Shown here piece by piece: positions 4,976 through 58,979 of a DNA stretch of 64,000 nucleotides. Source of the DNA: Rhodosorus marinus CCMP1338 (taxonomy: Eukaryota; Plantae; Rhodophyta); the NCBI GenBank assembly GCA_029953675.1, contig JAMWBK010000011.1, forward strand, positions 1 through 64,000, in the 5' to 3' direction. How positions within the stretch are numbered: position 1 is the stretch's first letter; the number at the start of each line of letters is the position of its first letter. Made by a program: the position numbers and the translations under genes. The notes beneath the pieces were generated by a model that did no database searches, was not told the origin of the DNA, and saw nothing but the letters and a program-made list of their open reading frames with translations.

Positions 4976-4984
4976 AGCCCATAC

Positions 4985-9780: not shown

Positions 9781-9984
9781 TCTTTTTTTACCCTCGGGGT
9801 TTTTTTTTTCAGCCTCCGATTAAACCATTCGTTTCTTTGAGAACCGCTGAATATCTTATCTATTCTGAACTGGCCTTTCGAGTGGTTTGGATTAGTGAAT
9901 TCTGGCTAATCCGAGAGTGAAAGAAAAATAAGCCCGCGGGGAAAGAAAGGAAGCCTGACCGTCTGTCCTCGTGTTTGACTCGTT

Positions 9985-35047: not shown

Positions 35048-35712
35048 CTACGAACGAATGGTTTAATCGGAGGCTGAAAAAAAAACCTCGAGGGGAAAAA
35101 AAGACTAAGCGCGGCGAAGTACTCGCGCCTCCAACATCAAAGCGGCATTCATGCGCCACAGCAGGAAACTTAAGCGGGTAAACAACGATTGAAGACGGTC
35201 AGGGCGTTCGCGGAACAACTCCCGAAGCCAGCGAGAACCAACAGAGTCCATGAACCCAAAGCACTCAATGATCAGGGGTACCAAGCGATGTGCTAGTGCC
35301 GAAGCACGAACACCAGGGGAAGACAAAGCCCCCGCGTATGTGATCTCTTTGCGGCGTCTCATGCTGGCGGCGGCAGATCCACGGCGCTCCCCCGCAGCCG
35401 GGAGATAACGACTAGCTGGAGGGTTAGGAACAGCAAGATCAACGTATGTGGTACAGCGGCTGTCGTCACAGGTGATCACCAGGTCGGCTACACGGCGTTC
35501 ATCATTGTGAAAGTCCGCGACGGGTAAAGGTTTCTCACGTTCGATTTCCAGACCGGCTTGCCGGACTATAGGCCGAAGTTCCCGGTATAACAGGTTCAAG
35601 ATCCGTGTGTGGCGGCGGGTTCGAGCACCTTTCACCGCCGGGCAACTAGCGAGCAGGTGGGCGCCAAAATCTGCGTTGTCTTCAGTCTGAGAGCAGAGAG
35701 GGCACGACGAAC
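35048..35712 (-). mobile_element. 5'-truncated type B copy with intact zinc finger and endonuclease frame
   Basis: ORF 35105-35635 near-identical to 9250-9780; includes the uninterrupted GAAGACAACGCAGATTTTGGCGCCC junction. Confidence 0.93.
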
Positions 35713-35931: not shown

Positions 35932-37383
35932 GTGCGGAGTAATGATGGCAGGTTGGGTTTGGAGGGATTGCTTGTAGCCGTACTCGGCACGGGACGGTTG
36001 TATCTGCCCTTGCAGAGAGTCGTTTTGGGCACGAGGAGAGGTGTCATCGACCCAAGCGGATTTCCGCTTTCGTGCTCGGTTCTTTCCTATGGGCAGGCTG
36101 TAAAAGAATCAGATGTTGTTGTTTTTGCATTCAAGGTTGATGACCATGCGGACGTCGTGGCAAGCTTGGGAACCCGGATGGGAGGGAAAGTGATTGTCGA
36201 TGTCTCAAACTCGGTACATGCGGAAGCTACCTACAGAGAATCAGAGACAAACTGTCAAGATCTGAAAGCACCGATCAAAGAGCGTGTGGGTCAAATACGA
36301 TACGCCATTGCCTTCTAGAGAAAAAACCGGATATACGCGGACATTGTCAAGGCATTCAACAGCACACTCGGCCTAGTCGCTCTCCCTTCCCTATAAATGC
36401 GCCGGCGCTAGCAGCAAGGCCTGTATGGTATCTGGTGACAGCGACGATGCGAAAGCTAGTCGCAAGAATAGCCCGGACCATGGGGTTTGAAGTCATTCAC
36501 ATGGGAGGTCTGGACGCATTGGCGGGACAGGAGGGAGAGGTCCATAGTTTCTCCATAGTTTCTTCTAGGGATTGAAGATTGCCTGCATAGCATCGGTTCT
36601 GCGCTTACCCTCGTCTTCATGCTGTACGCAACGATAGCGTACTGGGCCGTAGGTCCGTTGGAACGGATTACCTACCCGATAAGGTCATTTCTAATCGTAA
36701 CTGGAGACGTATCCGCTGGACTGTTGGCCACGACCTTCGATTGCTGGGTTCTGGAAGGTTTTTCGTGGTACGGCGACGCGTCCATTCCCAGCGTGGTTTG
36801 GGACGTGGCTGGCGATTCGGAAACAGCTTGGACTGGTCGCGTTCGACATCGCAATCCCCCACGTGATCATGGATGCAAAGGAGACGAACCGACGGAGTTG
36901 AAGATCTCAAGTCAGCTCGCTCCAGTATTCAGGACACCGGCGTTTCTTCTGTTCTTGGTCATGCCCTCCTGCTCGAGCGGCACAGCATCCGGATACTTCA
37001 CGTGGTCTGAGTTCCGATTCATCTTTGTCCACGTCGGATACGGCGTTGTAGGCTTCACACTAGCCCATGTAGTGTGTACCGGACTAGGTCAGATTGAGGA
37101 CTTCCACAGCTCGGCTGGCAACACCTCACCGTTCTCGGGTGAAAAAGCACTGAGCGCGATTGTCCTAGTAGCCTTGTTGGGAGTTTCGATTCTGCCCAAA
37201 TTCATCGTATCAGTACCGCCGATGAGCACCTGGGTGAGGAAGGTCAGATCTCATCAGAAGCGGGACAAGCAAGACTTGCTTCCAGTTTGGCTGAGGCTAA
37301 GCACTTCACCGAGCGAGGCCGATGTTAACACCAATTTGGATCCCGATCGGGCCGATCTTGTTTCTCAAGATTCCGTTTCTTAA
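35932..37383 (+). pseudogene. STEAP2/3/4-like metalloreductase (F420H2:NADP+ oxidoreductase-like domain plus heme transmembrane domain), frameshifted
   Basis: VAVLGTG, VVLGTR, GKVIVDVSN, IVKAFNS, LVSGD, RKLVARIARTMGFEVIHMGGL, alternate frame GTATRPFPAWFGTWLAIRKQLGLVAFDIAIPH, and FTWSEFRFIFVHVGY...LAHV follow STEAP motif order across several frames. Confidence 0.85.
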
Positions 37384-37640: not shown

Positions 37641-39321
37641 CTATTCCAAGGTAGCCTTGTACGTTGGAATTCGTCTGAATTTGCCGTTCACTTCAAAAGC
37701 GTGTGCAAACCGGAGGAGCTGTCCCTCCGAGAACGCAGAAGCGTACATCGATATACCCCACGGCAGGCCTTTGTGTAACGGTCCAGGGACGCTGCGGTAC
37801 AAGAGCAGCAGTCGATGATGTTCAGACAAATAAAATGGTTGATAAAACTCGACTAAAACTCAGTTTTTCGCGGCTCTTCTTCACGTACCTTATGTGAGGG
37901 TAACCAGCCATTGCCGGTGTTGTAGAACAACCTCCAATATTCGAGAGATTGTCTCCAACCAAAGGATCGATAACGTACGGCGGAAGGGAATTCGTCAGGG
38001 CGACAATAGCGTCCAGTTTGTGAGTCTCAAGAAGATCGTCAATCTTAGCCCGAGCTCCCTCCACGCTCGCTTTTCTGGCCGTCAGGTAGGACTCATCTCC
38101 TTTCCCGGGAAAACTTGCGACCTTCTCCAAAATTTCTTGCCCAAAGAATGGCATCACTCTGTCCGCGTGCTTGCGATTGTACGCAATCAAGTCAGGGATA
38201 CCCCGTAATCTGCCAGTCTTCTCCAGACTGGTCTCCAAGGAGTCCTTGAATTCAGTCAGCACAACCTTTGTTTCATTCTCGTTGAACAAGGCATACCCAT
38301 CCGCGTGAATTTCAACTATTTCGGCGCCCAGCCTTTCTAAATTGGTGATCGCCCCGACCATGGCAGCGTCAGCGCCTTGATGCATGGAAACTGTATCAAC
38401 GTCAAATCCAAAGCGGATGCCCTTCAGTATACTGTCGGTAGTGCCCGCCTCGTCGACAAGAAACTTTGTGTAATCGACACCAACGTAGTCTTTGCTCTTT
38501 TCCGTGACGGGATCGTCCGCATCCACACCGGTCAGCGCAGTTAATAGCATAGCAACGTCACGAACACAGCGCCCCATCGGCCCGACCGTGTCCTGAGTGG
38601 GGCTGAACGGCATCACCCCAGTGCGACTCAGGAGTCCAATGGTAGGCTTCAAACCGACAATACCGGTCATGGCAGCAGGTCTAGTGACGCTTCCGTCTGT
38701 TTCTGCGCCAATTGCCACGGTGCAAAAGCTTGCTGAGACCGCGGTCCCACTCCCAGAGCTGGATCCACAAGGAGTTCGGTCAAGAACGTATGGGTTCCTC
38801 GTCTGCCCTCCTAAAGTGCTCCATCCTGAGCAGCCTTGATCTGAGCGAAGGAAACCCCATTCACTCATATTCGTTTTGCCGAGGATCACTGCACCCGCCT
38901 CCCGCAATTTGCAGACGATAAACGCATCCTTGGGAGCCACATATCCCTCCAGCGCCAGACAACCACAGTTTGTCGACATTTTGTCCGCAGTTCCAATACA
39001 TTGTTTCAAGAGAACTGGAACCCCGTGCAGCGGCCCACGTGGGCCCTTGTCAGCGCGTTCTTGGTCCAGCCTACGGGCGATTTCCACCGCATCCGGATTT
39101 ATCTCGATCACACTTCGCAAAGTTGGACCGGACTGATCCAAGTCCTCGATTCTCTTCAGGTAGCCCTCAACTGCTTCTACTGAATTCAACACCCGGTTAT
39201 CAAACCTCTCCTGTAGTTCCGCAACGCTGACTTCTACCAGCTTGCCATGATCTCTTTTGTCCATGCCCCCGTCAAAGTCAGTGTGATGGTTTAACGCCCT
39301 CCTCCCGTTCTTGGTTTCCAA
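37641..39321 (-). CDS. Amidase signature family enzyme (peptide-amidase-like), two exons (39321-37889, 37791-37641)
   Basis: GPLHGVPVLLK, GKTNMSEW, PCGSSSGS, GAETDGSV; GYPHI continues after a 97-nt GT..AG intron (37888-37792) as SVPGPLHKGLPWGISMYASAFSEGQLLRFAHAFE. Confidence 0.92.
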
Positions 39322-39679: not shown

Positions 39680-42600
39680 GGTGGTTTTACTGGCTTTATT
39701 GGACTGGACTTTACTAGCATAGCCTGAAGCGCTACGCAAGGCGTGAAGATGAACTAATAACTAGGGAGGGAAGCATGCAACCCCAGGCGCCGATGGCGCG
39801 CCTCGGAAAGCATGTCGCTGGAATATCGCCAAAGGGAGACACTTAAACGCCTCAAGAGCGCCACATATTCAGTAGGATGCTCAGCAAAACATTTCCGCAC
39901 CCACTCTAAACCCGACTTATCGACGTGACCAAAGCTTTCCACAATGAATGGCTGGAACCGGTGAGAGCGAACCTCAGCGCAAGGCAGACTGGCCATGCTC
40001 TCAGCATACCGTCGTTCCTTAACTCTTCGAAGGGCTGAAGCCGCGGCCCCCCGGCGGCGGGCGGCTGCGGTGAGGTGGGCGCTGGCCACGGGGCAGGTAA
40101 TCGCAAGGTCCACATATGTTGAGCGTCTGGCAGCAGCGTCGGAGACGAGGAGATCGGCTATACAACGGGGCGGTGCAGAGTCCGAGATTGATCTGGGCAG
40201 TTCCGACTCAACCTCAACCGTATGCCCTATCCGAGTCAAAAATTCGCTGAGGATGTACTTGAGGCGAGTGTGACGCCTCGTACGGAGACCTCTCAACAGT
40301 CCGCAGGAACCCAGGAAGTGGTAGCCACAAGCGTCAATCCGACTCTCACATCCCTGACAGAAAGACGGCCGATTAGAGTGCCACGGAGCCTGTGGCAAAC
40401 CGAGATAGATCCGTGCGGCAGAACGGAACTGGAAAGCATCGAGCCGATGACTCAATGACGACGGTAGAGTGGTTAACCACAAGTGCGAGAGATGGCCTCC
40501 CATGCCGCGGAGACGAGCGGCAGTGGTAGGCGGCGTGAGAGGAGAATTGAGCATGACTGTGTGAGCGGCACTGTGTTGGCCCCAGGTGAGGCTATGTTGA
40601 ATCACATCAGTGCGGGAGCTCCACAATCGGCTCAAACCCGGGTAGTCTGCAACAGGTGACCCGGGGCTAGCCTCTCCGTCATCGGCAAGAACTCGGTCGA
40701 GGGGAGAATCCTCAATCGCTTCAGCTCGTCCCCATAACAGCTCCCTCCAGGAACGAAAGCGGGACCTATTTGCGTCCAGCACGGCGTTGCACCTCCTGAA
40801 CGCGTGTCGAAGACTATCATAAATTTTCAAAAGCGGGGGCGGCAGGGTCACTGGATCCTCGTTGGTCAAAGCTCGAGCCAAGAGGCAGGCACTTCGCATC
40901 TGGAAGGTCATCAACGTTCGCAGCGCGGTTGCCCAGGAGGCAACCGCCGCTGGCGAGCATACCAGCCCACGGTCTGCGACGCCGAATCCCCCTAATCGCA
41001 ACGGTAGAGCGATCTGTGCACGGATAAAGTCCCTGTCGGGAGCAGCTTCAAGATCGAGGGGCTCATCCAAGAGCGTTCCCCAGTGTTGCAGGGTCATTTC
41101 GTCGGCTTTAGCCGCGATCCACGAGCCCCAAGCTGGAGGCAGGCTGCGCAACCAGTAGTTGAGTCTGGGACCGGCACAAAAGCGGGAAAGCAAGCAGGCC
41201 GATTGCAGCATGCTGTCGGGTAGGTGCTCAATGGCGTCGGTGAGTTGCTTGTGCCGTGCCAAAACTCGCTCGCAGGATGCTTGGACAAAGTTGTCAGTCC
41301 CCAATCCGACGCCGTGGTGTTCGAAAAGCGTAAAATGAAACTAGGGGCTAGGAAGAAGAGCCACTCCAAGCTTGACTTTTCCAGATGCCCAATGGTGGTC
41401 TCCACAATGAAAGGCTGGAACCTGTGAGACCGGCCCTCTTCCCGGGGAAGACTGGCCATGCTCTCAGCGTACCGTCGTTCCTTCACGCGGCGAAGTACAG
41501 AAGCGGCGACGCCCTGCGGAGAGCGGCAGAAGGGAGATATGTACCGGACACGGGGCAAGTGACAGCGAGGTCCACATATGCTGAGCGTCTGGCGGCTGCG
41601 TCCGAGACCAGGAGATCTACGATGCAACGAGTAGACGTTGCGAACGGTGTACTAGTCACTGCCGATTCCACCTCGACCTTGAAGCCAACTCTTGTCAGGC
41701 GTTCGCTTAGGATGTATTTCAGGCGCGTGTGCCTCTTCGTGCGATGACCTCGCCGTAGTCCGCAGGAGCCGTAAGTGTGCTCACGGTGTGGACGCGTGTA
41801 CAGTTCCCTGCAAAAAGGCATTCAGAATCTTCACCAATGTGCGTCCGGCCCGTCGTGCTCAAAGCCTGCAAGAATTCCGTGCGAAGGCCTGAAGGCCCAG
41901 GGGAACGTTCGCGGCGGGAGGTACGGAGAAGTTCCGCCAAATCGGACTCGAGAGGCGTCATATCTATGCGAAGGCGGGCCAGCTCACCGGTTCCGCAAGC
42001 CGGTCATCATAGGGGAGGACAGGCGCCTGTCCCTCCAAAACCCGTGCCGCTCGAGTCAAATCGCCAACCTCCACCAACTTTTGCACCTGAACCCTCACTT
42101 GCGAGGCACTCATGGACTGGACCATGCGCACCGAGACCTCGAGCGACGTCATGTACACACTTTGTAAAACCTCAAAAAAAAAACACTCCCCTCGCAGGCA
42201 CATTGTGAGCCGGTCCCGGACTTGCCAGCTACGCGCTGATGTGCGAGCCGCGGCCAGGATCAAACGCCTCATTATCACCAAGAATTCCGACAAAACCATA
42301 TCCCGCAGATTGCGGGCCAAACCCGCAAATATAAAGTCTAAAATATACCCAGCCTGTAAGAGCTCCCTGCGAGGTAGTACTACCGGTGGAATCCGGCCCC
42401 TCAGAGGAAGTGAGTCCCCAAGCGAAGAAACCCACCTCCGAAGCCAACTCCGAAACTGCGTTCTCCAAACACCCCAGTCCCCTCTCACCTGCTCAACTTG
42501 ACCCTTTAGGTCCAGGGGCTCGATATCGCAGAGGTACCGGCGGAGCTAATGATCCTTCCCCCCCTTAGGCCCTGGGGAGTCGGTCCTTACTCGCTTGCCT

Positions 42601-44297: not shown

Positions 44298-44585
44298 AGC
44301 GGTTTTGCTGGCTTTATTAGCATAGCCGACAGCGCTACGCAAACCGTTAAAAGGAACTAAGAACTAGGTAGGGAAGCGTGCAAACTCAGGCGCCGATGGC
44401 GCGCCTCGGCAGGCATGCTGCTCGAATATCGCCACAGAGAGACACTTAAGCGCCGCAAAAGTTCCAAGTATTCAACAGGATGCTCAGTGAAACATTTCCG
44501 CAACCACTCCAAACCCGACTTCTCCACGTGACCAAAGCTTTCCACAATGAAAGGCTGGAACCGGTTTTTTGGTTTTGCTAACATG
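44298..44585 (-). mobile_element. Short type A 3' fragments
   Basis: FQPFIVESFGHVEKSGLEWLRKCF...HASLPSS* plus tail. Confidence 0.88.
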
Positions 44586-45319: not shown

Positions 45320-46795
45320 TCAAGCAGCGATATCCATGATCGTGTCGTCTCCGAAACCTCCACGAACGTCGTTTTGCACGCCTCCTGCGCTGGAATAGAC
45401 GATCGTATCATCTCCTGAGCCGCCGAACAGGGCGTTTTCGCCAGATGTATCTTCAATTGAGTCGTTTCCGCTACCGCCTTGAATCATGTCTGAAGCCGTA
45501 CCGCCTTGAATCATGTCGTTCCCGGCGTTGCCATACAATGCATTCAGGTATCCTCCCAGCGTCTTAATCACATCGTCACCAGGCCCTCCGAGGATCGTAT
45601 CAGTTGTACCATATCCTCCCTCAATATAATCCTGCCCGGTTCCTCCGTTCACGTATTCTACGCTGAAGTCATAGTAGTCGTAAGCGACTTCGATGTGGTC
45701 ATCTCCAGCCCCTCCGTACAGACGATCGGAATCTTGACCTCCGTATATCCTATCATCGCCTTCGTCTCCAAAAATTGTGTCTTCTCCACTATCTCCAAGC
45801 AGAAAATCATCTCCTTTTCCTCCGAAGACTTCATCATCACCAGCACCAGCGTTCACGAAATCACTGCCCTTGCCTAGGATTACAGTGTCATCTCCACTTC
45901 CGGAGTCAACATAGTCGCTTCCAACGCCGGTGTCAATAGTATCGTCACCTCCACCAGACCGGACAAAGTCATAACCCTTTCCAGCATCAATTATATCATC
46001 GCCACCTTGAGTATAGATCAGATCGTTGCCGTCCAGTGCTTCTATCGTATCGTTTCCCCCGTTCCCGTAGATGATATCGATCCCATCGGTACCGACAATG
46101 TGATCGTCACCTGACGTTCCATGAAATATCGTCGCGCAGTGCTGCTTGAGCGGACAGAGTGTCTGCTTTTCATTGCTCAAGAGCGTTGTTGGACATCCAC
46201 TGGATGCAAGCGGATAGTGAGCTCCGTTGACTCCCCCGCTGAAGGACTTTGCTCTGATCTTGGTGACCAAACAGATAGAGTCGTAGTCGCAGCAGTTCTC
46301 ACTTGACGGGATATCCCCTGGGCAGATTGTGAAGTCCACTCTGCTGTTTGGGAACTCAAGATTCCGGTCGATCTGGAATCGTTTTAAGCCGGATGGCACA
46401 TTAGAACAGTCCCCAAGGAAGAGGCCGATCTGAACCCTCGACATCGTGACCGTCGGCACGAGCGTATTGTTCACACGCACAACGCCATTGTATTCGACCC
46501 GCATGCAGCGTTCAAAGTCCGTAACCTGACCCCAGAATGGGAAGACCGTTATGGTCCCGGCAACCTCGTCAGAACCTTCTCTCGCAAATTCAATCTCCCG
46601 CCTGCGGGAAAGAGGGGGCAAGCGCGGGAACGGCTCAAACAAGATCGCCTGATTGTCACCCAGAAACGTTGCACAAGTCGTCTCTTCTTGACGTAAACTG
46701 ATAGCCGGCATCGCGGATGCACAGAGCACCAGCACCAATACCGCCACCACTAACATTGACAAACACCCTTTCATCAAGACTAACATACGCCGCAA
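45320..46795 (-). CDS. Secreted protein: unnamed Cys domain fused to RTX (hemolysin-type Ca-binding) GGxGxD nonapeptide repeats
   Basis: Hydrophobic leader; MSRVQIGLFLGDC..PSG..RFQ...NCC..DSICLV; then over 20 repeats such as GNGGNDTIE, SGGGDDTID, GGKGDDFLL, GGAGDDHIE. Confidence 0.9.
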   Translation of the reverse strand: MRRMLVLMKGCLSMLVVAVLVLVLCASAMPAISLRQEETTCATFLGDNQAILFEPFPRLPPLSRRREIEFAREGSDEVAGTITVFPFWGQVTDFERCMRVEYNGVVRVNNTLVPTVTMSRVQIGLFLGDCSNVPSGLKRFQIDRNLEFPNSRVDFTICPGDIPSSENCCDYDSICLVTKIRAKSFSGGVNGAHYPLASSGCPTTLLSNEKQTLCPLKQHCATIFHGTSGDDHIVGTDGIDIIYGNGGNDTIEALDGNDLIYTQGGDDIIDAGKGYDFVRSGGGDDTIDTGVGSDYVDSGSGDDTVILGKGSDFVNAGAGDDEVFGGKGDDFLLGDSGEDTIFGDEGDDRIYGGQDSDRLYGGAGDDHIEVAYDYYDFSVEYVNGGTGQDYIEGGYGTTDTILGGPGDDVIKTLGGYLNALYGNAGNDMIQGGTASDMIQGGSGNDSIEDTSGENALFGGSGDDTIVYSSAGGVQNDVRGGFGDDTIMDIAA

Positions 46796-49700
46796 TTAAC
46801 CAAACAGCCCAAACCTACCGCCATACGCTGCTGACCCCGCCCACTCGGCCCCGCCTACATCCTCTGCTCCGTTGAATTTCGGTCGTCTTATGTATGCCAT
46901 ATCTCCAACCCCGTTTTAGGAGACTCCGATTCGGTCAATGGTCTCAAGCCGATCCACTTTAAGATGAAAATAAAAACTAGAGCGAGTCATGTGTAGAGAT
47001 TCCACCAAAAAACCCTTTCTATTTGGACTAATCTCGATTCATCGCTGGCATCCATTGCCTCTCTCTAAAACACTAACAAAAAATATTCCAAAAGTCCAGC
47101 AGTGCGCCTCACGAAACTGCTATCTATAAACACCTTCAATCGTTTCCGTTTATCGAAAAGTTTTGAGCACGGCGAGTGGCGGGCCCCAGTCCTTCTCTTA
47201 TAACACCCAAGGTGTTGTCATTGCGTCAGCCAACCAACGCTTACCAGAACAGCTCCCACGACAGCTACGTAGCTTCCCATTGACAATCCTCAAAAAAAAG
47301 ATAAGAATCTTGTCAGCAGCGAACACATCCTTTTTTGTGCAGTGCAGGCTCACCACGATGCCCCTTGATCCCTTGATAGGCATGGCGGCGTGCATAGTTC
47401 AGCTGATCTCACGCCCTCGGTATCTCCCCAAAGTTCGTTTACAAGGACTCTTCCTCTTTCTAATGTACGCAAAACCAATACTTTTGGAACATAGTAAGAA
47501 TCTCCAATCCCCTTTCCTGCTAAAATTGATGTCTGATTGCATATCTCGCCTTATACTTTTTCACGTTGTCAATAGTAATATTTATTTACTTGTCTTGGAA
47601 TGTGCACCAATTTGTTTTTTAAACTAACGTATGTGTAGCTAATACTTGGGTTTTGGGGGTGTTGGATTAATTGATATTTATTTCCTGGAGATTGGTGATC
47701 TTCCAATGGAAGTAGAGATCTCACAACGACTGTGTAAATATTTACCAGAACATATTTATTATTATTGTTTTATTAATCTTAAATCATGGTGTCGGGGAAT
47801 ATACCTCAGCGATCATAATTCAACTTAATACAAAAACAAAAGTTTCTAAAACAGTTTGCAACTGGGTGAATAGGAGAGTACGAATTAATATTTTTTATAC
47901 AAGTTTATTTATACAGTATGATATAATAAAAACAAATATCTTGATTGGAAAAGGGGATGAACTAATCAGTATGCAGATACAGTTTGCCCCTTGATCCCTT
48001 GATACACCTGGCGGCGTGCATATTCGCTTTGTACTCGTCCTGTTTTGGCGAATTAGGAGGGAGCTCTTCGGGATATGATGAATAGACCTTGAGCTTTTTC
48101 AGGTTTCTCCCTTTGGGTTTTACTAACAACCCCCGATGGGTGTCCTACGAAAGGGAAAGGGAAGCCACAAATATGTAACGACTACCGGAATAGTCACCAG
48201 CTACCTAGTACTGGCAGCTCTCTCTCGGATATTGGGGGCAACCCAGGCCTTGCCTCTCCACAGCGTGCGGTTCATAGCTCCCTTTGGGTTGCTGGGTTAC
48301 CAGAGCTTCAATACCGGTGGATTGAGGACAGATTCGGTAGACTTTGCAACAGTTGCCTCGTCCGAGGAGTAAGAGTGCGAAAAGATTAAAAAAAAGCCCC
48401 CAAGCATCCAGCGGATTAGGAGCACATCGCAAACCGGTTTGGTTCTCTTAGCGACGCATCCACACAGTGTGATTTCCCAAGTGGCGGTAGGAAAAATAGC
48501 ACCTATGACCGTTTTTCCCCTGCGATTGCCATTCAGCCATGGCCACTGATGAAACGGATAGAGAGGTTGAGGGTCGTGTGTGGGTTGTTATACCTAATGC
48601 AATGAACGATGACTTTTGCTCTACACCTGTGGAAGGCACTTGCATCCTGCTCAATCGCGCAATCATCTCATTCAGCTCCTGACTGAAATCGCTTAATCAC
48701 CTTCCGGCAAAGTTTTTGTTGAACCTACGGCGCACTAGGACAAAGACACGAGTCAACCCCACCATATTCAACCATTTATCTTCAGAACTCTGTCATCAAG
48801 CCCACTAGACTCACAGTGCAGCTCAACAAGAAGAAGAAAAAAATTCAAACAGGTGCCCAACAGACAACAGGACAAGTTCTCAGCAGTAAGCGCTCTCATG
48901 GTCCGCTGGAGTCAATGCCTTACTCTGGATTACCTCCATGATGACCACTTACGACGCCAACCGAACCGTTTTACACTGTAGAGAAGCCATGGTATCATAT
49001 AGCCAACGAATACCATGGCTTAAGCCAGAGCCCCTGAATAGCGAACCAACCTTCCTCCGGCCAGTTGAGTAAAACCGATATCCAGGAACCTGAGGATTCG
49101 TACTATCGGGTAATATGCGTACTAATAGAATTCTTCGCCCTCCAGCACCGTTTTTTTACCCCCCTTCGCAATCTATTGCTCGTTCCGACTCACAGCATCT
49201 TATGCGCTTTTCACTCCTGAAATAGAGACTTTCCGACTCCGGTATTTGCCAAAACTAAAACTTCAAAGGGGGCTCAACGTTCATCTTCCATGTAAGGAAA
49301 AACGTAAGCTTCCCGAAAACCTACTGAAATACAAAACTCCCTAATCTGGGAGGTTGAAGCCTGTATTCTACGCACCTTCCCAGAGAAAAAGTCCTTAATA
49401 TCTAAACCTCATGAAAAGTTAAATAGTTTGCAAAAGCTTACACTGCGGGATTGCCAAATATACTAAATGTAGACTGTATAGAAAAACAGATTGAAATTTA
49501 ACTTCTTCTCGTGTTGAGCTTAAGGATGTGTAAGCTGGATGGTAATTTGCGAATGGCGAGAGGTGGAATTGAGTGGCCCAAGTAGTTGATCCGGTGGGGC
49601 CAAGCGGGAGTGTCCAGCGAAATCACAGCCTACGAATTCGATTTCTGGTCTCAATACACTCCGTGCAACAGTGGTTTGTCCGAGTTCGGTAATTCAACTG

Positions 49701-49979
49701 TCAGGATGCTCAACGGCGGTAGGCTCGTGGGTGGAGTCCTGGCAGGGAGTTCGTTGTGAACACATTTTTTTCATAGTAACAAAGGTATCCGACTTGAATC
49801 CATGGAGATCTTAGCCACTTTGAATCGCTCGACTCTCAGTAGTCAACCAGTCTATACTATCGTGTGTATAAGTACCTACGTGCGGCCGGGGCATGAAGGT
49901 CTCTCGTGATCACAGACCTACCAACAAAAAGCAACTAGGACTGAAGTGAGAAAGGTAAACTCGGTGATCACAAGAAGTT

Positions 49980-51542
49980 ATGGGTTCAGCAGTAAATTTT
50001 ATGATGTATGCTCTTCTTGGAGCTCTGTTGTGGCAGACTGTTCAGGGGTCGGCGGCAATTCGGGACAGATCGAAGCGATGGCCGTCCAGGAGGGTCTACT
50101 ACCAGTTTGACAGAAATGTGCCCCTTCATACGAGGACCAACGTTCAGAACGCAATGGACAGATATGAGAGGGAGACTTGCCTGAGGTTTGTAGAGTCGAG
50201 TCATAGCAGTTCTCGTATTTTGTTCCAGTCGGACGACTCCTCATGCTATTCGACGAGTATCGGGCGTACTGGAGGGGTTCAGAAGATCAATCTCGGTCCC
50301 CGATGCAACGATGGGTTCAGCAGCACGGTGTCTGTTGCTCTCCACGAGATCGGACACGCCATTGGGCTCTACCATGAACAGTCACGACCCGACCGGGACA
50401 GTTACGTTAAGGTTATTTCCGGAAACATCGTGAGCGGAAAGGGCCACAACTTTGACAAGAAGTCCTGGAGTGAGGTCGATACTCAGAGTGTGCCTTACGA
50501 TCGGAGATCTATCATGCACTACGGGACCACGTTCTTCAGCAAGAATGGAGCGGATACCCTTCAAAGCAAGAGCAGCAGTCAGCCGATCGGCCCATCGAGG
50601 GACCTGACCACATATGATATCCTTACCGTCAACAGGATGTACAGCTGTCCGGCTAAAGGCGTTGAAGGCAAACTCACAGTTACCGCGCTCAAGGGATACA
50701 GATTTCCCAACCACGACGGCTGCTGCTTCAACAGCGTCAAATCGGACTCGTACATGAAAATCACGGCGGTTGATGCCAACGGCCACTCGGTCACGAGGTC
50801 CTCCAAGGTTATCCACAACGACAACTCGCCCAACTGGAACCAGGACATCGAGTTTGGAATCGGAGAATGGCAGTTCCTGAGGGTCTCAGTCTTTGATGAG
50901 GACACAAGTTGGTTCACGGGAAAGGACGATCTCATCCTGCACGAGCAGGTGATTCCCCTCTACGCCGGTCTTCGTAGCCGAGCTCTGTGCCATAATCCCC
51001 GAGATTGCTCACGATTCGCGATCTTGAGGTCCAACCTGAAGGAGGACACCAACGAATGCAATCCAGACCCTTGCAAGAATGGTGCGACCTGCGTTGATCA
51101 GGTTTCTGACTTCACCTGCATCTGCAAAAGAGGGTTCACCGGTGATCGATGTGAGAGGGCCATCGGTCTGCTCCAGGTATACGTTAAGAGGGGATACAAC
51201 CTCCCAGACAGAGACGGCTTTGGTGCAGGAAGGTCCGACCCGTACGTGAGAGTGACCGGCTACGACGAGGACAGAAAGACCATGTCTCTCCGAACCCGCG
51301 AAAAGTCTGGTACTCACTATCCGGTCTGGAACCAGAACCTCTTCTTCGGATACCGGTCTTGGAAGAGCATCAAGGTTGAGGTCATGGACGCCGACGGATT
51401 TTTCAACGGAAAAGATGATTCTCTCCTCCCCATTGGCATCTTTACCTTCTCCTCACCGTTCTCGGGATCCAGGGTGCACCGAATCTGCGACTCCTCCAGG
51501 TGCTCCAGATGGGTGGAAATTTCGTTCACATACTCAAACTAG
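49980..51542 (+). CDS. Secreted astacin (M12A) zinc metalloprotease with C2-EGF-C2 tail, copy 1
   Basis: Signal peptide; HEIGHAIGLYHEQSRPDRD zinc site; SIMHY Met-turn; two C2 domains (SDSYMKI...PNWNQ, SDPYVRV...PVWNQ); EGF CNPDPCKNGATC...C.C...FTGDRC. Confidence 0.95.
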   Translation: MGSAVNFMMYALLGALLWQTVQGSAAIRDRSKRWPSRRVYYQFDRNVPLHTRTNVQNAMDRYERETCLRFVESSHSSSRILFQSDDSSCYSTSIGRTGGVQKINLGPRCNDGFSSTVSVALHEIGHAIGLYHEQSRPDRDSYVKVISGNIVSGKGHNFDKKSWSEVDTQSVPYDRRSIMHYGTTFFSKNGADTLQSKSSSQPIGPSRDLTTYDILTVNRMYSCPAKGVEGKLTVTALKGYRFPNHDGCCFNSVKSDSYMKITAVDANGHSVTRSSKVIHNDNSPNWNQDIEFGIGEWQFLRVSVFDEDTSWFTGKDDLILHEQVIPLYAGLRSRALCHNPRDCSRFAILRSNLKEDTNECNPDPCKNGATCVDQVSDFTCICKRGFTGDRCERAIGLLQVYVKRGYNLPDRDGFGAGRSDPYVRVTGYDEDRKTMSLRTREKSGTHYPVWNQNLFFGYRSWKSIKVEVMDADGFFNGKDDSLLPIGIFTFSSPFSGSRVHRICDSSRCSRWVEISFTYSN

Positions 51543-54446
51543 ATCTTGATCAGAATAGAGCCCATGCGCAGAAAAACAACAGCCATGTACATAAAAGAAA
51601 TTTCGGCAAAAAGACGCATCACTGCACCAACAGTGATTGCCTTCCACGCGATCTGAGCTACGGAACCTCCGTAGTTGAGGATAAGTACTTGAGCCTCGGA
51701 ATCAAAGACAGAGCCCAGTCTTGAACACGTCTGGACCTTTTTTCCAAGCCTAACAACCGTTTAGTGCTTGCTCTTATGGTGGTTGTGTTGCTCTTACATC
51801 GCTTCGCCGTGGATGCCTTGTTGATACCCCACCGTTTGGACCTCCAGTCTTGGATCGTTGAGTACGAAAATCTTTGAGCTCGGCATGGATGGTATCGGAC
51901 TTGGCAACCTTGTTCTCCTCGCAATAGGTTTGCAATAGATTTAGTCGACAATATCTCATGTTCACTGAATTGTAAATTTTCTCCTATATGTTAGTTATTG
52001 GAACCCATTGAGGTAGTCATTGAGTAGAGGCCTTCAAAGGGCATCTGTACCAGATATCAACAGCAATATTTATTTACTTGTTTTGGAATGTGCACCAACT
52101 TGTTTTTTAAACTAATGTGCGCGTAGTTAATACTTGGGTTTTTGGGGTGTTGGATTAATTGATATTTATTTCCAGGAGATTGGTGATCTTCCAATGGACG
52201 TAGAGATCTCACAACGACTGCGTAAATATTTACCAGAACATATTTACTATTCTTGTTTTGTGAATATTAGATCATGGTGTCTGGGAATATACCTCAGCGA
52301 TCATAATTCAACCTAATACAAAAACAAAAGTTTCTAAAACAGTTTGCAACTGTATGAATAGGAGAGTACTAATTAATTTGTTTTATACAAGTTTATTTAT
52401 ACAGTATGATATAATAAAAACAAATATCTTGATTGGAACAGAGGATGAACTAATCAGTATTCAGATACAGTTTCGCTTTTGTACTCGCCCTGTTTGGCGA
52501 ATTGGGAGGGAACTCCTGGGATCTGATGAATAGACCTTGAGTTTTTTCATGTTTCCCCCTTTGGGTTTCCCTGTGAAACTAACAACCCCGGATGGGTGTC
52601 CTACGAAAGGGAAAGGGAAGTCACAAATATGTGACGACTACCGGAATAATCACCAACTACCTAGCACTGGCAGCACTCTCTCGGATATTGAGGGCAACCC
52701 AGGCATTGCCTCTCCACAGCGTGCGGTCCATAGCTCCCTTTGGGTTGCTGGGTTACCAGAGCTTCAATACCGGTGGATTGAGGACAGATTCGTAGGGTTG
52801 CAACAGTTGCCTCGTCCGAGGAGTAAGAGTGCGAAAAGATTAAAAAAAAGCCCCCAAGCATCCAGCGAATAAGGAGCACATCGCAAACCGGTTGGGTTCT
52901 CTTAGCGACGCATCCACACAGTGTGAATTCCCAAGTGGCGGCAGGAAAAATATCACCAATGACCGTTTTTCCCCTGCGATTGCCTTTCAGCCATGGCCAC
53001 TGATGAAACGGACAGAGAGGTCGAGGGTCGTGTGTGGGTTGCTGTACCTAATGCAATGAACGATGGCTTTTGCTCTACACCTGTGGAATGCACTTGCATC
53101 CTGCTCAATCGCGCAATCATATCATTCAACTCCTGACTGAAATCGCTTAATCACCTTCCAGCAAAGTGTTTGTTGAACCTACGGCGTACTAGGACAAAGA
53201 CACGAATCAACCCCACCATATTCAACGATTTATCTTCAGAGCTCTGTCATCAAGTCCACTAAACTCACAGTGCAGCTCAACAAGAAGAAGAAAAAATTTC
53301 AAACAGGTGCCTAACGGACAACAGGACAAGTTCTCAGCAATACGCGCTCTCATGCTCCGCTGGAGTCAACGCCCTTACATCCCTAACTCTGGATTACCTC
53401 CATGATGACCATTTTACGACGCCAACCGAACCATTTTACACTATGGAGAAGCCATGGTATCATATAGACAATGAATACCATGAGTTAAGCAACCAGAGCT
53501 CCTGAATAGGAGCGAACCAAACCTTCCTCCGGTCAGTTGAGTAAAACCGATATCCAGGAACCTGAGGATTCGTACTATCGGGTAATATGCGTACTAATAG
53601 AATTCTTCGCCCTCCAGCACCGTTTTTTTCTCCCGTTCCCAATCTATTGCTCGTTCTGTCTAACAGCATCTTATGCCCTTTTATTTCCTGAATATAAACT
53701 TCCCGACTCCGGCATTTGCCAAAACTAAAACTTCAAAGGGGGCTCAATGCTCATCTCCCTCGTAAGGAAATGTAATCTTTCCAAAAACCTACTGAAATAC
53801 AAAACTCCCTAATCTGGGAGGTAAAAGCCTGTATTCTACGCACCTTCCCACAGAAAGAGTCCTTAATCTCTAAATCTCATGAAAAGTTAAATAGTTTGCA
53901 AAAGCTTACACTGTGGGATTGCCAAATATACTAAATGTAGACTGTATGGAAAAACAGATTGAAATTTAACTTCTTCTCGCGTTGAGCTTAGCATTGTGTA
54001 AGCTGGATGGTAATTTGCGAATGACGAGAGGTGGAATTGAGTGGCCCAAGTAGTTCATCGGGGGGCCAAGCGGGAGTGTGCAGCGAAATTCACAACATAC
54101 AAATTCGATTTCTGGTCTCAATGCACTCCGTGCAGCAGTGGTTTGTCCGGGTTCGGTAATTCAACTGTCAGGGTGCCCAACGGCGGTAGGCTCGTGGGTG
54201 GAGTCCTGGCGGGGAATTCGTTGTGAACACATTTTTTTCATAGTAACAAAGGTATCCGACTTGAATCCATGGAGATCTTAGCCACTTTGAATCGCTCGAC
54301 TCTCAGTAGTCAACCAGTCTGTACTAGCGTGTGTATAAGTACCTACGTGCAGCCGGGGCATGAAGGTATCTCGTGATCTCAGACCTACCAACAAAAAGCA
54401 ACTAGGACTGAAGTGAGAAAGGTAAACTCGGTGATCACAAGAAGTT

Positions 54447-56009
54447 ATGGGTTCAGCAGTAAATTTTATGATGTGTGCTCTTCTTGGAGCTCTGTTGTGG
54501 CAGACTGTTCAGGGGTCGGCGGCAATTCGGGACAGATCGAAGCGATGGCCGTCCAGGAGGGTCTACTACCAGTTTGACAGAAATGTGCCCCTTCATACGA
54601 GGACCAACGTTCAGAACGCAATGGACAGATATGAGAGGGAGACTTGCCTGAGGTTTGTAGAGTCGAGTCATAGCAGTTCTCGTATTTTGTTCCAGTCGGA
54701 CGACTCCTCATGCTATTCGACGAGTATCGGGCGTACTGGAGGGATTCAGAAGATCAATCTCGGTCCCCGATGCAACGATGGGTTCAGCAGCACGGTGTCT
54801 GTTGCTCTCCACGAGATCGGACACGCCATTGGGCTCTACCATGAACAGTCACGACCCGACCGGGACAGTTACGTTAAGGTTATTTCCGGAAACATCGTGA
54901 GCGGAAAGGGCCACAACTTTGACAAGAAGTCCTGGAGTGAGGTCGATACTCAGAGTGTGCCTTACGATCGGAGATCTATCATGCACTACGGGACCACGTT
55001 CTTCAGCAAGAATGGAGCGGATACCCTTCAAAGCAAGAGCAGCAGTCAGCCGATCGGCCCATCGAGGGACCTGACCACATATGATATCCTTACCGTCAAC
55101 AGGATGTACAGCTGTCCGGCTAAAGGCGTTGAAGGCAAACTCACAGTTACCGCGCTCAAGGGATACAGATTTCCCAACCACGACGGCTGCTGCTTCAACA
55201 GCGTCAAATCGGACTCGTACATGAAAATCACGGCGGTTGATGCCAACGGCCACTCGGTCACGAGGTCCTCCAAGGTTATCCACAACGACAACTCGCCCAA
55301 CTGGAACCAGGACATCGAGTTTGGAATCGGAGAATGGCAGTTCCTGAGGGTCTCAGTCTTTGATGAGGACACAAGTTGGTTCACGGGAAAGGACGATCTC
55401 ATCCTGCACGAGCAGGTGATTCCCCTCTACGCCGGTCTTCGTAGCCGAGCTCTGTGCCATAATCCCCGAGATTGCTCACGATTCGCGATCTTGAGGTCCA
55501 ACCTGAAGGAGGACACCAACGAATGCAATCCAGACCCTTGCAAGAATGGTGCGACCTGCGTTGATCAGGTTTCTGACTTCACCTGCATCTGCAAAAGAGG
55601 ATTCACCGGTGATCGATGTGAGAGGGCCATCGGTCTGCTCCAGGTATACGTTAAGAGGGGATACAACCTCCCAGACAGAGACGGCTTTGGTGCAGGAAGG
55701 TCCGACCCGTACGTGAGAGTGACCGGCTACGACGAGGACAGAAAGACCATGTCCCTCCGAACCCGCGAAAAGTCTGGTACTCACTGTCCGGTCTGGAACC
55801 AGAACCTCTTCTTCGGATACCGGTCTTGGAAGAGCATCAAGGTTGAGGTCATGGACGCCGACGGATTTTTCAACGGAAAAGATGATTCTCTCCTCCCCAT
55901 TGGCATCTTTACCTTCTCCTCACCGTTCTCGGGATCCAGGGTGCACCGAATCTGCGACTCCTCCAGGTGCTCCAGATGGGTGGAAATTTCGTTCACATAC
56001 TCAAACTAG
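54447..56009 (+). CDS. Secreted astacin-C2-EGF-C2 metalloprotease, copy 2
   Basis: Same architecture; three amino-acid differences from copy 1 (Y10C, V to I in GGVQ, Y to C in THYP). Confidence 0.95.
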   Translation: MGSAVNFMMCALLGALLWQTVQGSAAIRDRSKRWPSRRVYYQFDRNVPLHTRTNVQNAMDRYERETCLRFVESSHSSSRILFQSDDSSCYSTSIGRTGGIQKINLGPRCNDGFSSTVSVALHEIGHAIGLYHEQSRPDRDSYVKVISGNIVSGKGHNFDKKSWSEVDTQSVPYDRRSIMHYGTTFFSKNGADTLQSKSSSQPIGPSRDLTTYDILTVNRMYSCPAKGVEGKLTVTALKGYRFPNHDGCCFNSVKSDSYMKITAVDANGHSVTRSSKVIHNDNSPNWNQDIEFGIGEWQFLRVSVFDEDTSWFTGKDDLILHEQVIPLYAGLRSRALCHNPRDCSRFAILRSNLKEDTNECNPDPCKNGATCVDQVSDFTCICKRGFTGDRCERAIGLLQVYVKRGYNLPDRDGFGAGRSDPYVRVTGYDEDRKTMSLRTREKSGTHCPVWNQNLFFGYRSWKSIKVEVMDADGFFNGKDDSLLPIGIFTFSSPFSGSRVHRICDSSRCSRWVEISFTYSN

Positions 56010-56619
56010 ATCTTGATCAGAATAGAGCCCATGCGCAGAAAAACAACAGCCATGTACATAAAAGAAATTTCGGCAAAAAGACGCATCACTGCACCAACAG
56101 TGATTGCCTTCCACGCGATCTGAGCTACGGAACCTCCGTAGTTGAGGATAAATACTTGAGCCTCGGAATCAAAGACAGAGCCCAGTCTTGAACACGTCTG
56201 GACCTTTTTTCCAAGCCTAACAACCGTTTAGTGCTTGCTCTTATGGTGGTTGTGTTGCTCTTACATCGCTTCGCCGTGGATGCCTTGTTGATACCCCACC
56301 GTTTGGACCTCCAGTCTTGGATCGTTGAGTACGAAAATCTTTGAGCTCGGCATGGATGGTATCGGACTTGGCAACCTTGTTCTCCTCGCAATAGGTTTGC
56401 AATAGATTTAGTCGACAATATCTCATGTTCACTGAATTGTAAATTTTCTCCTATATGTTAGTTAATGGAACCCGTTGAGGTAGTCATTGAGTAGAGGCCT
56501 TCAAAGGGCATCTGTACCAGATGCAACGATGCATAAATAGTCAGCTCTTCATGAAGAGCTGAGCTGAGTGAATACTTCAGGTGGATTACTAACATAACCT
56601 TATGGGCTACGAAGGTCGG

Positions 56620-56771: not shown

Positions 56772-58979
56772 TCAGGTGCACATTGAGTTTTCGACCAACT
56801 TCTGCTTCGTTTCAACTGCCCACTCATAGGTTGAAGCGTAGCCGCGCTGGACCTTCCTCGGCTCTTTTTCTTTGTTGGCAAACGTTTCGTTGGGGGCGGC
56901 TGCAGCGCTTTGGCTGGCTGCGGCGACCCATTCCGATTTGTTGGTAGGTACCTTGATCCAGTAGCCGCATTTTCTCGAGATAGCATTCTCCTGGAAGAAT
57001 CTGATAGTGACCCAGCAGGCCATAATCGCGCAGAGGGAAATCAGAGTCAACAGTCCTGCAATATATTCGATGTGAATCACCGTCACGTCCGTCGGCTTGT
57101 GATAGTACAACTCCAGGTGTGAGTCGTGCGTTTGCGCGGAGATGATGCCAAGGACTGGCAGTGTCGCCGACGCAGCGTATGCCCCCAAAACCCTTCCTCG
57201 ATAAGCTATGCGGTTGCTAAAAACGGAAAGTTCAGGAAACGAATTCCTCAGCACAGCTTGCGTGCTGCCTATAAGCCTGGCATTCGCCGCTGGATCGCCT
57301 CCGATCAGCTCAAGCGAGATCCACGAAGCAGAGCTCCTCAGTGGAATAATCGCGAGGCTTTGCTTTCTCTTGGACTTATTAACCTTCCACTTCTCGTTCC
57401 AACGCCGTACTGTTGCCATCCCATAAACGCAGTCCATGCCCTCACTTCCATTGAGCCCTTTTGTACACGCCACTTCAAACTCCAGTCCAAGCACAAAAGT
57501 CCGGATCTTTTCTGGCACGTTCTTAGCAAGCCTCTCCCGATTCAGTCCGGCGATAAGATCCGCGCAACGGCTGTGTTGCTCGAGAGAAATTACCATTTCC
57601 GCCTTCTGGATGCTGATATCCACCCTCCGCCACCCGCTCCATGTCGTATACTTGCTGGCCCTAATCCTATCGCACCTACCCGTCGCCGCTCTGCCCACTA
57701 ATTCGCCGCATTTCGATCCGCTATAGAGCAGATCGGCGCGTACATCAAACCCTCCATCACTTTCGTCCAAACATAGTCCGCCCTGCCTGGCCAATGGTGT
57801 GAGGGCGATGGAGAAATCTGGGTCGTCATGATCCCACGACCACTGCCGACTTAGATCAGTGATCTTGATCTGCCGGTCAGCACCACCAGCATAGACCAGG
57901 TGACTGTCCACAGAAACTCTTGCCGTCGAGTAGGGAGAACTCTGCTCTTCTGACCCACCGGTCCCATCAAGGCGCGTGATGTTCATCGTCGATCGAACCT
58001 GTCTCTCGTCCTTGAAACGTTTGTATGAAACGTAATCGCTATTCAAAGGTAGACCAATACGGACGAGTATATCATGTATTTTCTCGATGGGTATCCCAAT
58101 CTGAAAATTCCGAACCGCGGAGACCCTCAAGTTCAGCGTTATGGACCTCAGAAACGTGGCTCTGAGCACACAGCTGGGATCATCAAATTCAAAGTTCCCA
58201 TCAAAGTCGGGCGCGTTGTACTGTTCCTTCATGGCGCACTTTGTCGTCTGCACATCGCGGTTTAACGGCTCTTTCACCCGATTTGCGCTGTAATCAAGTT
58301 CCAATTCATCGACCACGTCCACTTGGGACAGCGAAGATGTGAGAAACACAGTACTTCCTAGCATCAAGCTCTCTCTGATCAGCGTAGAGAGTCTAAAATC
58401 AACAGTTGCGCCTCGATTTCTGCAACCTACGTGAGCGGTCAAACCCATCATGCAAAATTCAGTGCTCCGAGTATACTTCCTGTACATATCCATGTTTCGT
58501 GCGACTTGTGCGTTTGGACTCAGATCCAGGACATTGTACGTCCCTGTGACATTCGTTTGACTAGTTTTAGTCTCAAAGTCCAGCCCATAATCGATCAACG
58601 CATGCATCGCTACCAGCGCAAAAGTGAATGTGAATCCGACCATTGACAACGCCGTCTCAAAACGAAATCTTGTCCTCTCATCCGCATCCACAGGTTTCGT
58701 ACTGGTCAAGTAGTTGGCCTTGTACCTCCCATACTTGCAGTATTCAAAACTCGCCTTCCTCTCGAAGGAAAACGACCGCCTCCGAAGCCTTAAATCCTTC
58801 CTCAGATCCAGCTCCGTCAGCTTCGTTGCTAGCAAACCCCATATAATGGCCAACAGAATCAGCAGAACGTCAGTTCCCACATTGACGAAAATCGGGCTCA
58901 AGTTCAATTCGACGGAGACCATCTCCGCACAATCTCCCAGATCCTCCCAAGATGTTCCAAGACGTTCAAAAATTCCCAA
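56772..58979 (-). CDS. 735-aa orphan membrane protein with three predicted TM helices and a large Cys-containing loop
   Basis: Long intact ORF; hydrophobic VLLILLAIIWGLLA, ALSMVGFTFTFALVAMHALI, YIAGLLTLISLCAIMACWVTI; no motif recognised. Confidence 0.75.
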   Translation of the reverse strand: MGIFERLGTSWEDLGDCAEMVSVELNLSPIFVNVGTDVLLILLAIIWGLLATKLTELDLRKDLRLRRRSFSFERKASFEYCKYGRYKANYLTSTKPVDADERTRFRFETALSMVGFTFTFALVAMHALIDYGLDFETKTSQTNVTGTYNVLDLSPNAQVARNMDMYRKYTRSTEFCMMGLTAHVGCRNRGATVDFRLSTLIRESLMLGSTVFLTSSLSQVDVVDELELDYSANRVKEPLNRDVQTTKCAMKEQYNAPDFDGNFEFDDPSCVLRATFLRSITLNLRVSAVRNFQIGIPIEKIHDILVRIGLPLNSDYVSYKRFKDERQVRSTMNITRLDGTGGSEEQSSPYSTARVSVDSHLVYAGGADRQIKITDLSRQWSWDHDDPDFSIALTPLARQGGLCLDESDGGFDVRADLLYSGSKCGELVGRAATGRCDRIRASKYTTWSGWRRVDISIQKAEMVISLEQHSRCADLIAGLNRERLAKNVPEKIRTFVLGLEFEVACTKGLNGSEGMDCVYGMATVRRWNEKWKVNKSKRKQSLAIIPLRSSASWISLELIGGDPAANARLIGSTQAVLRNSFPELSVFSNRIAYRGRVLGAYAASATLPVLGIISAQTHDSHLELYYHKPTDVTVIHIEYIAGLLTLISLCAIMACWVTIRFFQENAISRKCGYWIKVPTNKSEWVAAASQSAAAAPNETFANKEKEPRKVQRGYASTYEWAVETKQKLVENSMCT

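Follow-up and report, generated by a model that had tools for sequence, protein, structure and literature searches.

A tandem pair of propeptide-less astacin protease genes with a C2-EGF-C2 tail in the red alga Rhodosorus marinus

The locus and its two genes

The stretch of DNA analysed here (the window) comprises positions 1 to 64,000 of contig JAMWBK010000011.1 (1,442,050 bp) of Rhodosorus marinus CCMP1338, a marine, unicellular red alga. On its forward strand lie two near-identical single-exon genes, gene A at 49980..51542 (520 amino acids plus stop) and gene B at 54447..56009 (520 amino acids), which encode predicted secreted proteases of the astacin family and are the subject of this study. 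Both 1563-nt open reading frames (ORFs) are intact, and the two coding sequences (CDS) differ at five nucleotides, giving the amino acid exchanges Y10C, V100I and Y447C and two synonymous changes. Domains were assigned by a Pfam profile search (reported up to an E-value of 0.1), and both products showed the same order: a predicted signal peptide, an astacin catalytic domain, a C2 domain, a Notch-like epidermal growth factor (EGF) domain and a second C2 domain.

Neither product has an entry in the public protein set or among the public gene calls, and no R. marinus protein was found among the homologs listed in the database search (the best 120 of 520 matches, to which all statements on listed matches refer). 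Since the neighbouring amidase and RTX-repeat genes are annotated, the pair appears to be unannotated in the public R. marinus annotation. Genes A and B are nevertheless real nuclear genes of the alga. The gene coordinates annotated for JAMWBK010000011.1 coincide with those of the window without any offset, annotated R. marinus genes are situated 3-11 kb upstream of the pair, and the same contig of this chromosome-level assembly from long reads (PMC10250338) flanks the pair on both sides. The G+C content at third codon positions (GC3) of the astacin gene is 0.66, which is within or slightly over the range of the neighbouring host genes (0.52-0.62), compared with 0.33-0.37 in low-GC homologs of the sponge type. 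The pair is physically linked to host genes and host-like in composition in a genome that is not animal. An animal genome would have refuted the original prediction, which was made without knowledge of the source of the DNA. That prediction had also singled out the lack of introns. The ORFs are indeed single-exon, but this state is ordinary for red algae as well as for the sponge homologs described below; the neighbouring algal genes are themselves single long ORFs or carry one short intron, so that intronlessness is unremarkable here.

Tandem duplication and gene conversion

Self-BLAST and global alignment showed that the genes belong to two head-to-tail repeat units of about 4.47 kb on the forward strand, as expected from the predicted duplication, with both ORFs exactly at the coordinates given above. 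Unit 1 (47569..52056) consists of 2.4 kb of upstream intergenic DNA, gene A and a 0.5 kb 3' flank, and unit 2 (52057..56522) of the upstream intergenic DNA, gene B and the 3' flank. Divergence between the units reaches 6.6%, with additional indels, in the 2.4 kb upstream half, whereas the CDS differ by 0.32% and the 0.5 kb of non-coding 3' flank by 0.8%. A sliding-window comparison delimited a gene-conversion tract at 49880..52056 on the forward strand, with its partner at about 54347-56522, in which divergence is 0.3-0.8% versus 6.6% elsewhere in the unit; the 5' boundary of the tract is approximate, the windows being 250 nt long. The low-divergence tract extends into non-coding DNA, and the near-identity of the copies is therefore better accounted for by gene conversion than by purifying selection. 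The ratio of nonsynonymous (dN) to synonymous (dS) divergence between the copies is uninformative, as it rests on 5 differences only.

The protease domain

The catalytic domain (residues 25-224; 50052..50651 in A and 54519-55118 in B, forward strand) was delimited with Pfam, matches in the Protein Data Bank (PDB), Foldseek and invariant alignment columns. The Pfam Astacin profile (PF01400) matched residues 33-224 with an E-value of 3.2e-54 and a score of 183.9 bits (cut-off 22.5) along the full profile (positions 1-189 of 189), and the PDB sequence matches were ZHE1, meprin, BMP1 and astacin. The zinc-binding motif HEIGHAIGLYHE (residues 122-133, 50343..50378 on the forward strand) includes the catalytic Glu123 and the family-specific Glu133 and is followed by QSRPDRD; residues 122-140, HEIGHAIGLYHEQSRPDRD, correspond to HExxHxxGxxHE with the family-specific Glu and xxRxDRD. 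In an alignment of 57 family sequences H122, H126, H132, E133, R136, P137, D138 and R139 are invariant, as are S177, M179 and H180 of the Met-turn SIMHY (residues 177-181, 50508..50522, forward strand), whose zinc ligand Tyr181 is nearly so. Cys67/Cys223 and Cys89/Cys109 occupy conserved disulfide positions.

An AlphaFold2 model built from this alignment reached a pLDDT of 91.2 and a pTM of 0.80; residues 1-22 alone are poorly defined, and the model becomes confident at about residue 25. In Foldseek searches the modelled catalytic domain matched BMP1 (3edg) with a TMt of 0.93 and a root-mean-square deviation (rmsd) of 1.8 A, and crayfish astacin (1ast) with a TMt of 0.90. Judged by profile, motifs, modelled fold and cysteines, both proteins belong to the astacin family (MEROPS M12A) and are predicted to be secreted zinc endopeptidases. 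The canonical astacins (crayfish astacin, BMP1/tolloid, meprins and hatching enzymes) have in common with the algal protein the catalytic fold (TMt 0.83-0.93), HExxHxxGxxHE, an SxMHY Met-turn, the family-specific Glu that receives the buried N-terminus, and two disulfide bonds. They differ in being zymogens and in carrying tails of CUB, MAM, TRAF, ShKT or EGF type; no C2 tail on a canonical astacin was found in solved structures or in PMC9848320.

The missing propeptide

In the algal protein the N-terminus, MGSAVNFMMYALLGALLWQTVQGS, runs directly into AAIRDRSKRWPS (beginning AAIRDRSKRWP), with no residues between signal peptide and mature domain. The predicted signal peptide (residues 1-23; 49980..50048 in A, 54447-54515 in B, forward strand) was called by eye from the hydrophobic core FMMYALLGALLW, the -3/-1 rule and a low-pLDDT helix at residues 3-16, and cleavage is most likely at VQG/S, one residue ahead of the canonical mature start. 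In the HMMER alignment to crayfish proastacin (3lq0), residue 25 falls on chain residue 35. Since the propeptide of crayfish astacin has 34 residues (PMC9848320), A25 takes the position of the mature start. Canonical astacins are made as zymogens, and their propeptides, 34-486 residues long, carry an FXGDI motif that is common to animal astacin propeptides (PMC9848320). This FXGD-type propeptide marks the typical animal zymogen and not membership of the catalytic family. An FxGD motif was present upstream of the catalytic domain in 106 of 142 relatives, typically as LFEGD(I/L) followed about 40-60 residues further on by KR/AA. In the relative P0003 the mature start reads KR/AAIRDTSKLWPS, almost the same as the algal AAIRDRSKRWPS.

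For genes A and B, several in-frame stops occur within 25 codons upstream of each ATG. A tblastn search of the whole window with 87 homolog propeptides gave chance-level matches only, and a scan for [FLY]xGD[ILVM] found none in any forward frame between 44 and 56 kb. The 2.4 kb of upstream DNA was considered as a coding region and rejected, since it is 6.6% diverged with indels and holds no conserved ORF. By sequence, the propeptide is absent from both products: the original claim of a propeptide-less astacin, with the signal peptide abutting the mature start, was upheld, and the upstream prodomain exon that could have overturned it was not found in the window. A literature search for propeptide-less astacins returned nothing relevant.

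Among relatives of the algal protein the signal peptide also abuts the mature domain in P0019 (contig L003, 930-2531) and P0081, and in P0013 (L007, 10001-12358) about 14 residues separate the two. In all three the catalytic Glu is replaced (HDLGH, HTFGH and HIIGH, respectively), and they are likely to be weakened proteases or pseudo-proteases. The R. marinus proteins and their relative encoded on contig L002 keep this Glu. The pattern suggests that loss of latency may often be tolerated only together with loss of activity, and the intact algal enzymes are therefore the cases of interest.

The C2-EGF-C2 tail and its likeness to perforin

Pfam found C2 twice (E-value 1.9e-23) and EGF once (residues 360-390, E-value 3.2e-9), in agreement with the predicted tail. 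All three domains are encoded on the forward strand: the first C2 domain (C2-1, residues 228-355) at 50661..51044 in A and 55128-55511 in B, the EGF domain (residues 356-393) at 51045..51158 and 55512-55625, and the second C2 domain (C2-2, residues 394-520) at 51159..51539 and 55626-56006. The acidic Ca-ligand-like residues that had been pointed out in both C2 domains are real. They occupy five positions in C2-1 (D246, D256, D306, D308 and D316/D317), while C2-2 has D410/D412, D420, D470, D472 and D479/D480, and these columns are each conserved in 44-52 of the 57 family members. The loops of C2-2, LPDRD...SDPYV and MDAD...KDD, align with the Ca-binding D...SDPY and DxD loops of synaptotagmin-7 and -3, with loop lengths that differ from synaptotagmin. 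By sequence the C2 domains are closest to the synaptotagmin and NEDD4 types, and Foldseek recognised the C2 beta-sandwich fold of cPLA2, Munc13, perforin, E-Syt2 and synaptotagmin C2 domains. Loop 1 of C2-1, a Ca-binding loop, carries an insert with vicinal Cys248-Cys249 (50721-50726), reading HDGCCFNS in R. marinus and KDGGCCFRS in the L002 protein; this insert is absent from almost all homologs of the sponge type.

The EGF domain has six cysteines, gave a Pfam EGF match and Notch1/Delta-like matches, and is nearest to Notch and Delta EGF repeats among PDB sequences, so that its description as Notch-like holds. The DTNEC and CVDQVSDFTC elements of the calcium-binding EGF (cbEGF) consensus are present, and the Pfam EGF_CA profile scored 14.9 bits against a cut-off of 27. 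When EGF and C2-2 were modelled together, apart from the rest of the protein (pLDDT 92.5), Foldseek ranked C2 domains of type II highest, those of cPLA2, Munc13 and PLC-delta.

The tail had been called perforin-like. Perforin indeed has an extracellular EGF domain followed by a type-II, Ca2+-dependent lipid-binding C2 domain, as in the order of the algal tail, and whole perforin (3nsj) was the sole match to span EGF and C2 (162/166 residues). The rmsd over both modules is 8 A, and the inter-domain geometry therefore differs from that of perforin. The perforin C2 domain alone (4y1t) matched the C2-2 model with a TMt of 0.73 and an rmsd of 3.1 A at rank 13-14, whereas the C2 domains of cPLA2, Munc13 and PLC-delta scored higher. 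No MACPF domain was detected in the Pfam search of the products. The likeness is best described as an analogy of domain order, with no evidence of relationship, and by sequence the true relatives of the tail are the astacin-C2-(EGF-C2)n proteases of sponges. Ca2+-dependent membrane targeting by the C2 domains is a plausible prediction.

The sponge family and other astacins

The best full-length homologs have E-values of 2e-138 to 9e-134, 39-42% identity and 94-96% coverage, with the same astacin-C2-EGF-C2 order, often extended by further EGF-C2 units. All named matches bearing C2 domains are from sponges, Geodia barretti and Halichondria panicea; named matches from other animals cover the protease domain alone, and no named red-algal protein was listed. 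The Geodia protein (CAI8053110.1, 'zinc metalloproteinase nas-4') and the Halichondria proteins ('nas-14-like' and 'nas-4-like') have the domain order of the alga. Within the sponge family homology extends over 85-96% of the algal protein (E-values of 1e-70 to 1e-138), and the zinc site, Met-turn, cysteine pattern, C2 Ca ligands and single-exon genes in tandem arrays are alike. The sponge proteins differ in having, after the signal peptide, an FEGD propeptide and a KR cleavage site, both of which the algal ones lack; the algal tail has the minimal form of the family, C2-EGF-C2, its C2-1 bears the Cys-Cys insert in loop 1, and identity to the sponge proteins is only 31-42%.

Gene calling of the prokaryotic kind on metagenome contigs yields exactly the Geodia protein, and its gene must therefore be single-exon in the sponge. 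On low-GC megabase contigs three or more single-exon homologs follow one another in tandem. On contigs L001, L102 and L103 such arrays of at least three single-exon astacin-C2-EGF genes fit within about 20 kb, and genes with VWA_4 domains are located between astacin copies in L102 and in the Tara contig L007. An animal-type talin gene adjoins one homolog.

The two halves of the protein behaved differently in the searches. The catalytic domain alone is 43-49% identical to the sponge-type family, and astacin catalytic domains are widespread in bacteria and also occur in giant-virus contigs at 25-41% identity; the best bacterial one, from a Legionella metagenome-assembled genome (MAG), ranked 55th with 41% identity and 135 bits and matched the catalytic domain only. 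The 294-residue tail alone matched the sponge-type family only (36-41% identity, about 290 residues aligned). Many astacin catalytic domains turned up in scans of IMG/VR and of roughly 185,000 genomes of prokaryotic species, none of them joined to this tail. The astacins of giant viruses (L008, L011) and of Trueperaceae MAGs (L022, L056) have kept an (I/F)EGD(I/M) propeptide-like motif and end in unrelated C-terminal domains, Cys-rich or repeat modules.

Astacins outside Holozoa amount to fewer than 400 scattered sequences, the family is reported absent from plants, and the survey of the non-Holozoan members published in 2023 (section 2.3) names no red alga (PMC9848320). Such xenologues, in oomycetes, in bacteria (myroilysin, flavastacin) and in Legionella, are precedents for a horizontal spread of the catalytic domain. 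They combine this domain with unrelated tails and the examined ones keep a propeptide, with latency altered to a cysteine switch in myroilysin (PMC9848320), while in the alga an entire multi-domain animal architecture would have been transferred and latency removed completely.

Closest relatives and age of the lineage

Trees were built by neighbour-joining from the catalytic domain, from the catalytic domain plus C2-1 and from full-length proteins, with and without long branches. In the tree of catalytic domain plus C2-1, the R. marinus proteins form a clade with the L002 ORF and P0019 at 99% bootstrap. The L002 ORF starts with MSRGAAWVLFALIAIFTGASATAGIRSRSRRW and is 48% identical to the algal protein; P0019 is 40% identical. 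Both derive from the same organism (Logan runs SRR22824282 / SRR22824290), their contigs have 50-54% GC, like R. marinus, and in both the signal peptide leads straight into the mature domain, as in the alga. This algal-type clade amounts to three loci in two organisms, while the sponge-type proteins are very diverse and numerous. By distance, the nearest 40 catalytic domains are all from the C2-bearing family.

BLASTN and TBLASTX comparisons of L002-L004 with the window gave the astacin itself as the sole match. Beside the astacin on L002, a GT61-like glycosyltransferase frame (4828-6382, reverse strand) is interrupted by shifts of frame and by an in-frame stop, and would be either an intron-containing gene or a pseudogene; a database search with it gave no homolog.

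Between the R. marinus and L002 genes dN is 0.52 and dS is saturated. As dS is saturated, dN is about 0.5 and GC3 is host-like, the lineage must be old and under long-term constraint, and a transfer, if it occurred, would be old and not recent.

Neighbouring genes and repeats

Annotated R. marinus genes lie at 29876-30790, 32611-33513 and 36447-37383. They are followed on the reverse strand by amidase gene NDN08_007013 (37641-39264, a 1624-nt model for 508 amino acids), 11 kb upstream of the astacin pair, whose ORF at 37822-39321 is 100% identical to the annotated 'hypothetical protein'. Its homologs are one metagenome sequence at 86% and then, at about 53%, exclusively bacterial proteins (Gimesia, Mycobacterium, Synechococcus), and the gene was probably transferred from bacteria to the alga. 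Directly upstream of the pair, the annotated RTX-repeat gene (45320-46900, reverse strand) encodes a product that combines a signal peptide and a Cys-rich domain at the N-terminus with at least seven GGxGxD nonapeptide repeats (Pfam HemolysinCabind, 1e-39), by its sequence a secreted Ca-binding protein of bacterial type in a red alga. Convergent with copy B, a 735-codon ORF (56772-58979, reverse strand) has hydrophobic segments near both ends and gave no match in the Pfam search.

The window is a repeat-rich contig end, with dispersed repeats reaching up to 44.5 kb. It holds a reverse-transcriptase ORF (1656-3596), an inverted pair of 627 bp (9207-9833 / 35053-35678, 98% identical) and a dispersed repeat family at about 4992-5865, 23563-24024, 39709-40584 and 44311-44565. 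The idea that the window begins at a telomere was rejected, since base 1 is without telomeric repeat.

Origin and possible function

Gene transfer from bacteria to red algae is well documented, and transfer from animals to algae is rare. We favour, with moderate confidence, an old animal-to-alga transfer followed by loss of the propeptide and by a tandem duplication homogenised by gene conversion. In such a history one intronless gene would have passed from an animal donor to the ancestor either of Rhodosorus or of a larger group including the organism behind L002 and P0019. The propeptide would then have been deleted, so that the signal peptide came to abut the mature start, and the gene would have been duplicated in tandem, the coding half of the unit having been homogenised recently by gene conversion. 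The more specific version, in which the whole multi-domain protease gene came from a sponge-like, early-branching animal into the red-algal lineage and signal-peptidase cleavage replaces propeptide removal, is put forward more tentatively, at slightly less than an even chance.

The direction of transfer is derived from two observations. The FXGDI motif is common to animal astacin propeptides, so that the propeptide-bearing form is taken as ancestral; and the sponge-type proteins, which keep this ancestral motif, form a large and diverse group, whereas the algal side is tiny. The direction from animal to alga is in this sense inferred and not a demonstrated nesting within sponge diversity, since the sister-group bootstraps of the neighbour-joining trees are below 50%. 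The suggested acquisition from a marine invertebrate agrees with sponges as the nearest named relatives among the matches listed, and the domain-wise phylogeny recovered the algal-type clade firmly but left its sister group weak. A literature search for an association between Rhodosorus and sponges gave nothing relevant.

At the protein level, a signal-peptidase cut at about G23/S24 would expose an N-terminus at most one residue away from the Ala at which the mature enzyme canonically starts, and this new N-terminus could tuck against Glu133, as in activated astacins (PMC9848320). There would then be no zymogen stage, and the enzyme would be active once folded and loaded with zinc; constitutive activity is a plausible prediction for both proteases. 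In seawater both C2 domains and the cbEGF-like module would be saturated with Ca2+, and the loaded modules may tether the protease to anionic lipid or other extracellular surfaces. Matrix remodelling, nutrient scavenging and defence are candidate roles, as is the interaction with a host that the original prediction had put forward.

Several points weigh against this reconstruction. Neither gene figures in the public gene calls or protein set, a sign, perhaps, that the pair is silent. The sponge homologs with species names are three only, and the best-scoring ENA/NCBI contigs are without species assignment. The weak sister-group support applies to all neighbour-joining trees. The history would be more complex if the source organism of L002 and P0019 is not a red alga. 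Finally, the cleavage site was inferred by eye, and the likeliest site leaves one extra residue.

Among the alternatives, the one that survives best, although unlikely, is that the genes are silent or decaying relics, foreign genes no longer expressed or functional. They are not annotated and are placed in a repeat-rich contig end, the 3 non-synonymous versus 2 synonymous differences between A and B give no signal of constraint, and the propeptide-less kin P0019, P0013 and P0081 have lost the catalytic Glu. Against this reading, the two ORFs are intact, their codon composition is host-like, and every catalytic, structural and Ca-ligand residue has been retained despite the deep divergence from the L002 gene.

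A little less probable is an origin outside animals, the architecture having come from bacteria, giant viruses or protists, or having moved from algae to sponges. An entirely bacterial or viral gene was rejected, as such relatives match the catalytic domain only and none matches the C2-EGF-C2 tail. The wide occurrence of catalytic domains in bacteria and giant-virus contigs, the deep nodes of the catalytic-domain tree (below 50%) and the many homolog contigs without taxonomic label fit a non-animal source; it has to be set against the nearest 40 catalytic domains, all of the C2-bearing family, the Notch-like EGF domain, and the contrast between numerous, diverse sponge-type proteins that keep FxGD and an algal clade of three loci in two organisms.

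It is improbable that genes A and B encode normal zymogens whose latency peptide comes from an exon overlooked upstream or from an N-terminal segment of non-canonical type. In favour of this reading, introns do occur in some R. marinus genes, as the amidase model illustrates. Against it, the ORF itself begins with a segment resembling a signal peptide, which leads straight into the mature start, the ATG has several in-frame stops upstream of it, and the regions searched yielded neither an FxGD motif nor similarity to a propeptide. The upstream DNA has diverged as expected of non-coding DNA, and two independent relatives have the same layout.

Contamination or misassembly, with sponge DNA wrongly joined into an algal contig, is very improbable: the family is otherwise typical of sponges, the genes are missing from the public annotation and the window is a repeat-rich contig end, but the same long-read contig with annotated R. 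marinus genes and shared repeat families surrounds the pair, its GC3 is far from that of the low-GC sponge-type homologs, the two units have diverged by 6.6% in situ, and the best identity to any database protein is 42-49% (among the matches listed), so that no sequenced sponge could be the source.

If the favoured history of animal-to-alga transfer is correct, the locus would represent a rare transfer of a complete four-domain secreted protein, a functional effector, from an animal to an alga, and a natural experiment indicating that astacins can dispense with latency. With its catalytic site intact and its propeptide gone, the algal protein offers a natural test of the rule that an aspartate-switch propeptide keeps astacins latent. 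The public R. marinus annotation appears to miss at least genes A and B, and the uncharacterised sponge family gains in them a small, intron-free and easily expressed representative for biochemistry.

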